In this document: one piece after another, positions 1 to 4,461 of the stretch
Position numbering within the stretch: position 1 is the stretch's first letter
Layout: every line of letters starts with the position of its first letter
Virus record (IMG/VR): IMGVR_UViG_3300020188_000808
Span: 203,784 to 267,783 of that record
Strand: one strand, 5' to 3'
Length of the DNA stretch: 64,000 bases
Notes under the pieces: generated by a model
The model's database searches: none
Told to the model about the DNA's origin: nothing
Seen by the model: the letters and a program-made list of their open reading frames with translations, nothing else
Translations under genes and position numbers: made by a program

Positions 1-2041
1 TCTTAGTAATAAACAAACCTGACTCAGCAACAATTTCTCTACCTGCCGCAATAACATCTGATCTGCTCTTTGGACAATGAAATGCTTCTTGCATAAACTT
101 TGGAAATGTTTCATTCGCCGCTTCACATACTTGATCATATAATGTAATAACACTATCTTTTGTCCAAGGAATTTTTCCAGCATCAATATCTGCTTTTAGT
201 ACAGGGTGGGCACTAAAGTAAACAGAATCAGTATCACCATAGATAATACTATCACCTACATGATCATATGTGCCTGTAATAACTTTATTAACTTCTGCAC
301 TCATATGTTTTGCGATAGCTCTACCTGTTAGTGTTGTTGATTGACCAATCCGCGGATCAAAGAATCTACAACCAGGATTAAGAATTGCACCATACAAACT
401 GTTCAAGTTAATCTTCTTAACCAACTGTCGTTTATCCCAAAACTCAACTTCAATTCTGTTTCCAGCATCAATAGCTTTGCCTTTTTGTTTTTGTAAATCT
501 TTACGTTCACTATACCAACGTTTAAGAAGTCCTGGAATAACACCGTCAAATTCATTAGTTAAGATAGTTCCGTTAGCAGTTAGCATCCATGGCTTGTGTG
601 AATCAAATATTAGTTTGTATATCTCAGCACCACTAAGAATTTCACTTTCACCGTTTTCAAAGTCAACAGTAATACTAATGTCTTTCTTCTTCTCCATAAC
701 TGCTTCGTATTCAATAGTACCAAAGCGGCCTTCCCAAGCACCTGCAAATGACTTCTTCTGAAGTGTCATTGCATCTTCAACCATTGCATCAGTTAGCTCA
801 GGACGTAATTGTCCTATAACTGTTGCAGGATCCATATTTAATGCTCTAATAACAGACGGATATAGTGAATTCAAATCCATTGAACCAATCCACTTGTGTA
901 CACCTTTTTTAGGAAATGCTACATAAGCACCTGCCGCAGGATCACTGCCAGGCTCACGTTTTACTCTGTTAGGAACTTGCAAGCCTCTGTGATGTGCTTC
1001 GTTGATAATTGCTTGTTCTGTAACTGCAACTGCACCCATAGTGGTCTGTAGTAACACCGTGTTACTATGTGCAAGTTCGTTACTAAGATCAATAAACTTT
1101 AGTTTTTTGTCCAGCTTGTCCAGTAGTGCAACGTCTTGTCTGTTGTACTCAATGAACGTTCTGAAGTCATTGTTATAAAGTTGATCGAGCGTACCTTCGT
1201 ACACAGTTTTGTTTTCGCCGATCTCAAGTTCGCCAATAGCGTCGAGTCGATATGTGTGTCTTTCTTCATATGTGTATTTACGATATAATTCCAAACTATC
1301 TAAATGCACTCTGCCTATTAGGTCATAGGTTTCAGCTTTACGTCCGTACTTTTCATATTCACGTTTCTTAGGAAGTTGTTTCCATAAACAAAAACGTCTT
1401 GTATCATCTTTACTTAAAACTCTTTTTACACGATTTACAGTATATGGAATATCATAACCTTCACTGTTCCAACCTGTAAGTATATCACTGTCTTGTATAA
1501 TATCAAGAAACGCTTCTAACATGTCGCCTTCTTTTTCATACAAGTATGTGTTTGGAAAATCTTTTACTTCTTCTTTTGCTTGTTCCATTGATAAGCCTTT
1601 AGGAGGCATAGCAAATGTAACTAGACTATCTAACCATTGTAAGTGTACAGTAATAGCAGTAATAGGCATAAACGGATCACTAGGATCAGCAAAGCCACGT
1701 TCTGGATCAAAGTCTGTCTCAATATCAAAAAAGCAAACATTCAACTTAGGTGAATCTACATTTAAATAGTTTTCACTCAAACATTGGAAGATTGGATTAA
1801 TATCACTTTCAAACAATTCTTTGTTTGCGTTAATGGCTAGTTCTTTACGAAACTGTTTTGTGTTTTTAGCAACAATTCTGCTTAACGGATCGCCGTAAAT
1901 ACTTTTGTACTTACCACGTTGATCTTTATAATAAAATGTGTATTTGATTGGGTATTCTGTGTAAGAACGCTTACCATCTTTTCGTTCGACTACTCTGATC
2001 ACATCCTGATCACGATCAAACTGTGCGTCTACATAACTCAT
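1..2041 (-). CDS. Family B DNA polymerase, 5' part; runs off the left edge and is absent from the ORF track
   Basis: Manual translation from ATG at 2041 gives MSYVDAQFDRDQDV. ExoI FFDIETDFD (~1710-1735), motif A SMDLNSLYPS (~860-885), motif B KINLNSLYG (~390-415), motif C YGDTDS (~225-243). AGGAG SD at 2049-2053. Confidence 0.95.
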   Translation of the reverse strand, partial: MSYVDAQFDRDQDVIRVVERKDGKRSYTEYPIKYTFYYKDQRGKYKSIYGDPLSRIVAKNTKQFRKELAINANKELFESDINPIFQCLSENYLNVDSPKLNVCFFDIETDFDPERGFADPSDPFMPITAITVHLQWLDSLVTFAMPPKGLSMEQAKEEVKDFPNTYLYEKEGDMLEAFLDIIQDSDILTGWNSEGYDIPYTVNRVKRVLSKDDTRRFCLWKQLPKKREYEKYGRKAETYDLIGRVHLDSLELYRKYTYEERHTYRLDAIGELEIGENKTVYEGTLDQLYNNDFRTFIEYNRQDVALLDKLDKKLKFIDLSNELAHSNTVLLQTTMGAVAVTEQAIINEAHHRGLQVPNRVKREPGSDPAAGAYVAFPKKGVHKWIGSMDLNSLYPSVIRALNMDPATVIGQLRPELTDAMVEDAMTLQKKSFAGAWEGRFGTIEYEAVMEKKKDISITVDFENGESEILSGAEIYKLIFDSHKPWMLTANGTILTNEFDGVIPGLLKRWYSERKDLQKQKGKAIDAGNRIEVEFWDKRQLVKKINLNSLYGAILNPGCRFFDPRIGQSTTLTGRAIAKHMSAEVNKVITGTYDHVGDSIIYGDTDSVYFSAHPVLKADIDAGKIPWTKDSVITLYDQVCEAANETFPKFMQEAFHCPKSRSDVIAAGREIVAESGLFITK

Positions 2042-2057
2042 ATTTTAACTCCTTGTA

Positions 2058-2103
2058 TGTCACTTGGGGCTGACAAAAACCAATAAGGTCGCTTATGGCC
2101 GAC
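2058..2103 (-). promoter_or_regulatory. Two tandem hairpins with GCCNNAAG 8-nt loops upstream of the polB SD (putative translational operator)
   Basis: Minus strand GTCG-GCCATAAG-CGAC (2103-2088) and TGTCA-GCCCCAAG-TGACA (2075-2058), 4 nt before AGGAG. Confidence 0.6.
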
Positions 2104-2407
2104 TTTTACCTTCATTCTTAAAATATTCATTCGCCTCTCTTGCCTTGTCATCTATCCAAATATCATAGTGTGGCTTTCTAAAACTTAGTGTTGTGTATAG
2201 TACACCCCACTCCGCAAACTGGTCTTTAGTAAGCTCACTCCAATCTTTGCCTGTGCTACCGCCTCTAGCAGTCCAATAATGTATTTCATTGCCTTCATTA
2301 TACAACTTATTAAAGTGTTGTATACGTTGAACATCTGGTTTACTAAATTCGTACTCACTGTTATTATTATAACAGATAGTTCCGTCTATGTCAACCATAT
2401 ATTTCAT
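2093..2407 (-). CDS. Minimal HAD-superfamily phosphatase
   Basis: Probable start MKYMVDIDGTIC at 2407. DxDGT motif I, WTARG, KP..D.WIDDK. Confidence 0.8.
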   Translation of the reverse strand: MKYMVDIDGTICYNNNSEYEFSKPDVQRIQHFNKLYNEGNEIHYWTARGGSTGKDWSELTKDQFAEWGVLYTTLSFRKPHYDIWIDDKAREANEYFKNEGKSRP

Positions 2408-2682
2408 ATTACGAACAACTGTATTAATGCCCAAAGGTTCATTGCTGAGAACCAAGAACAAAGTATAATTACAAATGCCGCTTGTCTAATAACTGCACTA
2501 ACAATGCCCAAAATACTTCCAACCAAATATAATGGCACAAATATTGTTGTTGCAGGGTCTAATATAGTAAAGCTCAATATTGCACTTGCTGAGATTAAGA
2601 ACAATGCCTCAATCATTTCGCAATAGAATGCAACAGGACTTAGCCTATAACTTGTTTTAAAGAAATTGGTTACTCTATTCAA
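2404..2682 (-). CDS. Small 3-TM membrane protein
   Basis: Three hydrophobic segments. Likely TTG start at 2682, just after the upstream stop (ORF track start 2712). Confidence 0.6.
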   Translation of the reverse strand: MNRVTNFFKTSYRLSPVAFYCEMIEALFLISASAILSFTILDPATTIFVPLYLVGSILGIVSAVIRQAAFVIILCSWFSAMNLWALIQLFVI

Positions 2683-2683
2683 A

Positions 2684-2944
2684 CTACTTGTCCTTGCCAA
2701 CTGTAACAACAAGTGTTTCTAGATCATCAAATTCATCAGCAACTTTATGCCATTCACCTTTTTGGGCAATCTTAATTGCTTTATTAATAAGGCTTGGTTT
2801 AATATCTAGTTCTTCTGCTACTGCTTTTACAGTATCTTTAAGACCTGTAGTTAAGTCTTCTACTTCTTGGAGTACTGTAACTCCTTCGTTAACCAATCTT
2901 TCTAGTTTGGCTTTTTCTTCTACGCCGTATGTTCGATCGCTCAT
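2684..2944 (-). CDS. Small dsDNA-binding protein (T4 DsbA / GapR-like helical fold)
   Basis: 86 aa helical, KLERLVNEG..LKDTVKAVAEELDIKPSLINKAIKI. Strong SD and its own sigma70 promoter. Confidence 0.6.
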   Translation of the reverse strand: MSDRTYGVEEKAKLERLVNEGVTVLQEVEDLTTGLKDTVKAVAEELDIKPSLINKAIKIAQKGEWHKVADEFDDLETLVVTVGKDK

Positions 2945-2968
2945 GTTATCTCCTTAATTGTTATATAC

Positions 2969-2997
2969 ATTATACACGAACTGTAAGTGCTTGTCAA
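2969..2997 (-). promoter_or_regulatory. sigma70-type promoter
   Basis: TTGACA-17-TATAAT, perfect consensus. Confidence 0.85.
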
Positions 2998-3003
2998 CAA
3001 CTA

Positions 3004-3543
3004 TTATTCAGCTTGTGTACGATGAATTGTTAAATTACCTGCTATTACTATTCGCTCTTTGTCGTTCTTCTGTGGGGGTACTTCGTGTGTTACCCAACCT
3101 GGGAATACTGCTATAAGTCCGGGATTTGGAAATATAGCATTACCACTTGTTGGAAATACTAAAGGTGCATCATCTGGAGTTGCATCAACATAGTATACAA
3201 AACTCCAAATAGCAGGATGATGTGCATGTGGTTTACAGCTATCGCCTTTGGAATATACTGCACCCCAACAATCTGTTACTTCATACTTACCACCAACTAA
3301 ATGTTCAAGACCATTTTGTACAACATCAATAGCAAAGTTAATAATCTTTTTAAAGTCAGGATCTCTAAACATTGTCCATTCTGTCATATTTGCTTGAACA
3401 TTTGTTTTTCTAAATTGGCAATCCCCTCTAGCTCTAATTTTTTCAGCTAGTATTGGATTGAGTGTCTCGGCATCTTCATATACGTGAGTATAGATGTCAG
3501 CAGATTCTTTAAACTCTAATTTTTGCACGTTTGGTATGAACAT
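3004..3543 (-). CDS. Putative 2OG-Fe(II) oxygenase
   Basis: HAH...FPGWVTHEV...ERIVIAGN DSBH signature. Confidence 0.8.
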   Translation of the reverse strand: MFIPNVQKLEFKESADIYTHVYEDAETLNPILAEKIRARGDCQFRKTNVQANMTEWTMFRDPDFKKIINFAIDVVQNGLEHLVGGKYEVTDCWGAVYSKGDSCKPHAHHPAIWSFVYYVDATPDDAPLVFPTSGNAIFPNPGLIAVFPGWVTHEVPPQKNDKERIVIAGNLTIHRTQAE

Positions 3544-3548
3544 GCAAT

Positions 3549-3556
3549 TATTTATA
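3549..3556 (-). promoter_or_regulatory. T4-type late promoter TATAAATA
   Basis: Exact T4 late consensus, 5 nt before the ATG at 3543. Confidence 0.7.
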
Positions 3557-3576
3557 TAGGGGTGTTTAATGTATTG

Positions 3577-4461
3577 TTATTGCTGGTTCTGTCCAGCTTC
3601 AGCTTGTTTCATAAGTGCTTTGAACTTACCAAACAGTTGAGGATTAGACATCATACTTTGAATAGCAGTTGCATATGGAGCAATCGCTTTAATAATATTT
3701 GGCGGTAATGTTTCACCTGATGATATTTTATCTAAGCCTTTTGCAACTTGGGCACCACTTGCTTTACCACCAACAACACCTTTTAATGCTGTTGCTTTTT
3801 GTGCAACCTGTTGTGTTTGTTTGTTATCGTCGCCTTTTGCTAAGCCAGTAACTTTGCCAATTACGCCGCCTTGTTCTGCACCAGCTCTTTTGATATCATC
3901 TCTACTAGCACCTGTGGCATTCGCCGCAAAATCTACTGCCTTGTCTGCTACTTTACCTGCAACTTTTTTAACAATGCCTGCACCTGGTGCTTCTTTTACA
4001 AATTTGTTTTTAGCTTTATTAAATCCCTTCCATCCTGTTTCGGGCTTTAATTTAACTGCACCGTCACTCCAATCTGATCCAGTCCATGTCCAAGTTACAG
4101 TACCATCGTTGTATGCACTACCTGGTTTTAAATCATCTATTGTTTTAGGTTGTTTTTGAGTTTGTGCTTTAGGATCTGGTGTCGGTGTTGGTGTTGGTTT
4201 TGCTTTAGTCTTTGTGTCTTTTTTAGAAGTGTCGCCTTTAGCAATCCAATCATCAGTTTCTTTATCGTCAATGCCACCGCCGGGTGCGATTGGTTCTTTA
4301 CTGCCGTGTGCGCCACCAAACTTTTTTGAAAATGCTTTATTTAGATTACTAAGACCTGTACCTAAACGATTGTTGCGAACTAAATCATCTACTTTACCAA
4401 GCGATGCTTTAGTGTTTAACCAACCTCCTGGAGGTGCTTCTACAAGATCTTCAACTTTCAT
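3577..4461 (-). CDS. Lys/Gly/Ala-rich putative capsid-internal protein
   Basis: N-terminus MKVEDLVE|APPGG, internal FVKE|APGAG, PT linker. Confidence 0.55.
   Translation of the reverse strand: MKVEDLVEAPPGGWLNTKASLGKVDDLVRNNRLGTGLSNLNKAFSKKFGGAHGSKEPIAPGGGIDDKETDDWIAKGDTSKKDTKTKAKPTPTPTPDPKAQTQKQPKTIDDLKPGSAYNDGTVTWTWTGSDWSDGAVKLKPETGWKGFNKAKNKFVKEAPGAGIVKKVAGKVADKAVDFAANATGASRDDIKRAGAEQGGVIGKVTGLAKGDDNKQTQQVAQKATALKGVVGGKASGAQVAKGLDKISSGETLPPNIIKAIAPYATAIQSMMSNPQLFGKFKALMKQAEAGQNQQ

Follow-up and report, generated by a model that had tools for sequence, protein, structure and literature searches.

The DNA polymerase of phage T4, gp43, represses its own translation by binding an 18-nt hairpin (5-bp stem, 8-nt loop) in the leader of gene 43, at about -36..-19 from the AUG and just 5' of the Shine-Dalgarno (SD) sequence. 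Operators of this type are single, gene-specific hairpins of 16-18 nt placed about 20-40 nt before the AUG, and the determinants of the T4 and RB69 operators are the subject of a paper (PMC137073). The loop contains UAAC in T4 and RB69 and UAAA in RB49, CAAC occurs as a SELEX variant, and the top 10 bases of the hairpin are identical in T4 and RB69. The operators of T4, RB69 and RB49 are reported not to be pseudoknots, and some T4-related polymerases do not autoregulate. A second T4-type replication gene, gene 32 of T4, T2 and RB69, is repressed by its own product through an H-type pseudoknot with coaxially stacked stems. [quoted passage not shown] According to a 2010 review, the gp43 operator is known only from close T4 relatives, and the gene 32 pseudoknot was called possibly the only viral pseudoknot used for translational autoregulation. 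Outside phages, the rpsO (S15) operator of E. coli is a small pseudoknot next to the SD that works by entrapment, and the preQ1-I and SAM-II/V riboswitches are H-type pseudoknots of about 25-35 nt just 5' of the SD, with an A-rich loop lying in a helix groove. Tandem and very small riboswitch aptamers occur, among them the tandem-hairpin guanidine-II.

The locus studied here belongs to an uncultured salt-marsh jumbo phage. The stretch analysed (the window) comprises the last 64 kb (64,000 nt) of IMG/VR record IMGVR_UViG_3300020188_000808 (267,783 bp, hereafter G000), which CheckV estimates to be 75% complete. Near-identical DNA occurs in salt-marsh metagenomes and metatranscriptomes, and genes in this part run on the minus strand (Table 1). 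The polymerase gene encodes a family-B enzyme of 889 aa that is 27% identical to T4 gp43 (E 1e-55). It is at most about 50% identical to any cultured phage polymerase, the nearest being those of Phosso, Atu_ph07, PA5oct and the RaK2/121Q-type jumbo phages. The ORF just upstream encodes a small HAD-type phosphatase-like protein with a DxDGT motif (PF25109, a weak match, E 0.0036).

The original prediction described two tandem hairpins in front of the polymerase SD, with loops that share 6 of 8 positions, stems that differ by a compensatory G-C to A-U closing pair, and the second hairpin ending 4 nt before AGGAG. We checked these statements one by one and each of them is correct. What the prediction did not note is that the UAA stop codon of the upstream ORF lies inside loop 1. 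Its interpretation, a duplicated autogenous polymerase operator with T4 geometry but a different loop sequence, is supported only in part, as set out below.

Table 1. Positions of the features in the window, in G000 and in loci of related phages (L numbers). P1 and P2 are the inferred pseudoknot helix and the hairpin stem; L3 is the third loop.
Feature	Position	Strand	Sequence or segments	Remarks
Tandem leader	2110..2058	-		With the SD, the 73 nt before the polymerase start
Pseudoknot module 1	2088..2110	-	P1-5' GGU 2110-2108; linker AAAA 2107-2104; P2-5' GUCG 2103-2100; P1-3' GCC 2099-2097; L3 AUAAG 2096-2092; P2-3' CGAC 2091-2088	
Hairpin 1	2103..2088	-	GTCG-GCCATAAG-CGAC (RNA, GUCG-GCCAUAAG-CGAC)	
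Stop codon of upstream ORF	2093..2095	-	UAA	Inside L3 of module 1
Spacer between modules	2082..2087	-	CUUAUU	Sequence varies among aligned relatives
Pseudoknot module 2	2058..2081	-	P1-5' GGU 2081-2079; linker UUU 2078-2076; P2-5' UGUCA 2075-2071; P1-3' GCC 2070-2068; L3 CCAAG 2067-2063; P2-3' UGACA 2062-2058	
Hairpin 2	2075..2058	-	TGTCA-GCCCCAAG-TGACA (RNA, UGUCA-GCCCCAAG-UGACA)	-34..-17 from the AUG; followed by UACA
Shine-Dalgarno	2049..2053	-	AGGAG	4 nt after module 2 and 7 nt before the AUG
Polymerase start codon	2039..2041	-	AUG	
DNA polymerase gene	1..2041	-		First 680 codons in the window; the rest lies upstream of the window in the genome; whole gene at G000 203155-205824
HAD-like upstream ORF	2093..2404	-		Last 6 codons encoded by module 1
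Sigma70-like match in HAD-like ORF	2366-2394	-	TTGACA-17-TGTTATAAT	12/12
Small ORF	2944..2684	-		
Sigma70-like match before small ORF	2969-2997	-	TTGACA-17-TATAAT	12/12
2OG-Fe(II) oxygenase gene	3004-3543			PF13759, E 3e-13; 1 kb upstream
Region in metatranscriptome contigs	1769-3600			RNA runs X3, X6, X10, X11
Third GCCNNAAR hairpin	G000 104156-104171	+	AAAA-GCCTCAAG-TTTT	Outside the window
Inserted gene	L012 738-1358			
Inserted gene	L062 2303-3001			
Inserted gene	L068 1033-2529			
Inserted gene	L089 2898-3509			
Additional 5' hairpin	L066 2940-2965			Also in L024, L038 and L048

Neither word frequency nor folding energy marks the site as special. As a bare word, GCCNNAAG is not enriched in the window (20 matches against 14.2 expected), a fold of the 96-nt region is not unusually stable (z = +0.66), and single hairpins of this type are weak (-1.9 to -3.9 kcal/mol; -3.7 and -3.9 kcal/mol for the two in the window). 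Energy is therefore not the evidence. In contrast, hairpins with at least four Watson-Crick pairs and a GCCNNAAR loop occur only three times in the whole 267,783-bp genome, where shuffles give a mean of 0.86, and two of the three are these neighbours on the sense strand. The third has no GGY partner (see below) and is probably a chance occurrence; its conservation was not tested.

Conservation and covariation in related phages settle the question of chance. A scan of IMG/VR with the polymerase protein alone returned 80 loci with 77-100% amino-acid identity. Of these, 17 have the same two hairpins and 35 have one hairpin (mostly GUUG-GCCAYAAG-CAAC) directly before the SD, so that 52 of 80 carry the element next to the polymerase start. 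A further 14-15 have that hairpin 600-1500 nt upstream, followed by another gene that abuts the polymerase gene, and 13 have none. An AGGAG-like box follows the element in relatives. Pattern scans added many more leaders, bringing the total to well over a hundred related phage contigs, although these scans also returned chance matches that lack the hairpins and the polymerase gene.

The hairpin stems (P2) show compensatory change throughout. On 32 distinct sequences, all four core pairs of hairpin 1 and its one-module counterpart change on both sides (GUCG/CGAC, GUUG/CAAC, AACG/CGUU, UUCG/CGAA, AUCG/CGAU and GUUA/UAAC, plus one G·U). In total 127 of 128 cells are paired, and 0 of 500 shuffles reached the observed score. 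The set derived from the pattern scans contained the further variants GUCA/UGAC, GUCC/GGAC, GCGG/CCGC and GCGA/UCGC. Hairpin 2 alternates between GUCA/UGAC and GCCA/UGGC (alignment pair 11-24 is UA:14, CG:8, UG:1), and the wobble intermediates GUCA/UGGC and GCCA/UGGU also occur, with G·U intermediates in L097 and L143. We consider it very likely that the hairpins are real RNA structures.

Three further features of the alignments needed explaining. A GGY triplet is conserved 6-8 nt before every loop while the bases before it vary (AAGG, AUGG, ACGG), this holds even where the triplet lies inside the upstream coding region, and the stretch UUGGUWUUUG (TTGGTWTTTG in DNA) between the hairpins is invariant. 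GGY is complementary to the first three loop bases, GCC, which suggests that each hairpin is half of an H-type pseudoknot, with a 3-bp helix P1. Among 164 modules, all five distinct GCU-loop variants carry AGY upstream, and every GCC loop has a GGY upstream (three cases in which the nearest triplet had been mis-picked were resolved by eye). To test this, we predicted that other leaders with a GCU loop should also carry AGY. A scan for GUUGGCUAYAAGCAAC found two leader lineages, and both were compensated (AGC and AGU).

As MAFFT did not place gaps in the variable linker, we counted P1 on three gap-free length classes. P1 is paired in every cell of 67 distinct rows, including all cells of module 2. 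The first pair is GC in 62 rows and AU in 5, the second is an invariant G-C, and the third is U·G, C-G or, once, U-A with an ACC loop. Sliding the partner by 1-3 columns drops overall pairing to 13-57%, with two exceptions at 72% and 79%. On a polymerase tree the GCU lineages L163, L015 and L048 sit separately among GCC lineages, which implies at least three independent double changes, although this tree was built in quick mode and rooted at the midpoint. The geometry is that of a classical H-type pseudoknot: L1 is 1-4 nt across a 4-5-bp P2, there is no nucleotide between P2-5' and P1-3', which allows coaxial stacking, and L3 is 5-6 nt and A-rich across a 3-bp P1. P1 is, however, only 3 bp, its covariation rests on one of its three pairs, and no physical probing was done, so that we regard P1 as likely rather than certain. 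The U·G pair of P1 and the G·U intermediates of P2 can form only on the sense strand (the dominant U·G pair would be A·C on the other), and the structure therefore belongs to the transcript.

Other roles for these sequences were considered and rejected. Pairing of loop 1 (CCAUAAG) with the downstream CUUAUUGG, as a terminator-like alternative or a 3' pseudoknot, was rejected because the GCU-loop variants are compensated in the upstream triplet, while the downstream UUGGU stays fixed because it serves loop 2. A start-stop mini-ORF (AUGUAG) before the one-module element is not maintained, as the AUG is often AAG or AGG. GAAGG is unlikely to be a second SD, as only GGY is conserved.

Module 2 has the same layout as module 1 (GGU-UUU-UGUCA-GCC-CCAAG-UGACA), and the two copies look like a tandem duplication of the whole pseudoknot and not only of a hairpin. 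On the polymerase tree of 146 relatives, two-module leaders are spread over the deep branches and the one-module clade is nested. The duplication may therefore be ancestral, with module 2 lost later, although the midpoint root does not give the direction of change.

The element occurs once per genome, always at the head of the polymerase unit. A first covariance model, built from a narrow alignment, missed divergent leaders and was replaced by a second. This model of the two-module leader gave exactly one strong hit (51-78 bits) in each of four large records of 72-268 kb, in each case at the polymerase gene, and no hit in a 165-kb record of the element-less type. The next-best scores were at most 20.5 bits, and the next-best hits inspected, from either model, lay in coding or antisense sequence and are chance matches. 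No other copy was found in G000. A blastn search of the leader against 50,697 phage records found only chance matches, and the distant cultured relatives Phosso, PA5oct, Vibrio 2.275.O and 121Q have ordinary terminators or nothing before their polymerase genes. The motif itself appears to be undescribed: the main text of a catalogue of 8,495 candidate structured RNAs from IMG/VR (PMC10690425) never mentions a polymerase, although the catalogue's individual entries, which may include this motif, were not examined.

Searches of Rfam 15 (including preQ1, SAM-II and phage motifs) with the window leader and with a one-module leader gave no relevant match at E up to 10. This bears on the possibility that the element is a tandem small-molecule riboswitch, sensing a nucleotide-related metabolite to tune polymerase translation. 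A compact H-type pseudoknot with an A-rich third loop immediately 5' of the SD, in tandem copies, in marine or estuarine phages would be in keeping with this. However, only AAR is conserved among the unpaired bases, with the linker and loop positions 4-5 free. This is far fewer than in preQ1-I, SAM-II/V or guanidine-II, and here, in contrast to these, the SD is not part of any helix, so there is no obvious expression platform. Ligand binding was not assayed, and these features alone do not decide for or against an aptamer; we consider a riboswitch very unlikely. Equally speculative, but not excluded by the data, is that the tandem 25-nt pseudoknots are a new, minimal ligand-sensing or ribosome-trapping RNA class specific to a large clade of uncultured aquatic jumbo phages, coupling polymerase synthesis to a nucleotide-pool metabolite, or directly to ribosome or upstream-ORF traffic, rather than to polymerase binding.

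A role at the DNA level or in transcription, as an intrinsic terminator or attenuator of the upstream gene, a promoter or operator site, or an origin hairpin, is highly improbable. Hairpin 1 does overlap the upstream stop codon and is followed by a U-rich stretch, UUAUUGGUUUUUG, but this stretch is explained as the P1 strand plus linker of module 2. An intrinsic terminator has a G+C-rich stem of at least 5 bp followed directly by a U run. A scan for intrinsic terminators found none, and the stems are only 4-5 bp with 8-nt loops. In one-module relatives the hairpin is followed directly by the SD and not by U's, and the upstream gene varies or is absent. As noted above, the U·G pairs would be A·C on the other strand. 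RNA-library contigs also run through the element into the upstream genes, although this is weak evidence.

Several lineages have sigma70-like promoters ending 60-85 nt before the polymerase start, which places the element in the 5' UTR, at or near the predicted 5' end of the mRNA. One-module leaders also carry an additional hairpin immediately 5' of the GGY, often right after a promoter-like site, whose sequence differs completely between lineages while pairing is kept (GCC..AGC-AAUA-GCU..GGC, GCUC-ACUUAC-GAGC, GUCC-ACUCAC-GGAC and a GCC/GGC form). This hairpin, which the window lacks, is a candidate 5'-end stabiliser. These observations, and the persistence of the element at the head of the unit whichever ORF follows, would fit a purely cis-acting role without a repressor, either as a 5' stabiliser against RNases or as a platform that keeps the SD exposed and so enhances or standardises initiation. 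However, a stabiliser needs neither an invariant loop sequence (GCC..AAR) nor two copies, the hairpins are thermodynamically weak, and no other gene in the genome uses the element. We therefore regard this reading as unlikely.

In about 14 of the 80 relatives a gene is inserted exactly between the leader plus SD and the polymerase start, so the element heads the transcription unit rather than the polymerase ORF as such. The inserted genes encode a 2OG-Fe(II) oxygenase-like protein, a tryptophan halogenase (E 2e-91) and two unknowns, and end between -4 and +12 nt from the polymerase start, as expected for translational coupling. The window itself instead has a 2OG-Fe(II) oxygenase gene upstream. 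In L013, L014, L042, L057, L063, L067, L071, L072, L074 and L079 a conserved promoter-like site (TTGACG-17-TATAAT) lies about 110 nt before the polymerase start, inside the 3' end of the inserted 2OG-like gene, and could give the polymerase a transcript that bypasses the leader.

How does the element compare with the T4 gene 43 operator? It lies in the leader of a gp43 homologue and reaches the ribosome-binding site, and hairpin 2 matches the T4 hairpin in length, stem, loop size and, closely, in position. Like that operator, it is gene-specific. The sequences differ, however. The loops here (GCCAUAAG and GCCCCAAG, consensus GCCNNAAR) do not match AAUAACUC, there is no alignable similarity to the T4 leader, and only a YAA core is shared (UAAG, UAAA or CAAG here), in another register. 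The inferred GGU:GCC helix and the tandem arrangement also set it apart. It is thus not a sequence member of the T4 operator family. It resembles the gene 32 pseudoknot in kind but not in position or partner, and the stems of the latter are larger. With the rpsO operator it shares a small pseudoknot next to the SD, but there is no sequence similarity, and rpsO is a ribosomal-protein system and not tandem.

We propose that the leader is a translational operator, in which a protein recognises the pseudoknot(s) that abut the SD and blocks 30S binding. The analysis itself establishes a conserved, strand-specific structure and its single-copy link to the head of the polymerase unit; that it acts as an operator is our inference, and neither binding nor repression was assayed. 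In this view P1 would stack on P2, and the A-rich 5-nt strand (NNAAR) would cross the P1 groove. The inference rests on the absence of any anti-SD sequence, so that the SD is not sequestered by the RNA itself, on the weak stems, on the few conserved unpaired bases (AAR) and helix shape, which look like a recognition surface, and on the precedent of T4 and RB69. We consider a protein-bound operator more likely than not. The most likely protein is the polymerase itself when it is not engaged on DNA (probability about 0.45), and the occurrence of the element once per genome is as expected for autogenous control. The 13 relatives that lack the element and those with an inserted gene argue against this reading, as do the loop sequence, which differs from that of the T4, RB69 and RB49 operators, and the lack of autoregulation in some T4-related polymerases. 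Two modules would give cooperative or graded repression, and where a gene has been inserted control would pass to the polymerase by translational coupling.

Alternatively, the repressor could be another phage or host protein, such as a dedicated RNA-binding regulator, an SSB-like protein or ribosomal protein S1. The pseudoknot shape and AAR bases next to an unsequestered SD fit protein recognition in general, the element keeps its place when a different gene follows it, and the loop is unlike that of T4. A single copy per genome, however, argues against a regulon-type repressor such as RegA. Profile searches of the 268-kb record, which is only about 75% complete, found no match to the RegA (PF01818) or gp32 (PF08804) families, while the RegA search recovered T4 regA at E 2e-75. 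This alternative seems unlikely.

The element is very likely a new control element for polymerase synthesis, perhaps a counterpart of the self-repressing polymerase operator of T4. It occurs in a widespread group of uncultured aquatic (salt marsh, marine) phages, some on contigs of more than 230 kb, at the same place before a gp43-type polymerase. It provides a compact candidate operator of 25 nt per module, a natural series of compensatory variants for structure-function work, and a marker for the head of the polymerase unit that also shows where cargo genes are repeatedly inserted. If the polymerase binds it, RNA-mediated self-control of family-B polymerases is older and more plastic than the T-even examples suggest.

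In the subclade of the window the upstream ORF reads into module 1, as also seen in L002, L004, L005 and L009. A ribosome finishing that ORF must unfold module 1, and in our model this would transiently disable the module. The first codons of the same ORF contain a perfect extended sigma70 consensus, over the VDIDGTICYN motif, which is kept (TATAAT or TATACT) in relatives that have this gene (L002, L004, L005, L009 and L018-L022). It may be a real internal promoter for the polymerase message or a by-product of the protein motif. A second 12/12 match lies just upstream of the small ORF. Salt-marsh metatranscriptome assemblies contain contigs of 4.5-4.8 kb that span the leader, the polymerase 5' end and the upstream genes. 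They are compatible with a polycistronic message but do not prove one, as they give no 5' ends and do not exclude DNA carry-over. These contigs carry 2-3 fixed differences (2341 T>C, 2523 C>T, 2592 A>T), and show that the phage was present, and possibly active, in several samples.
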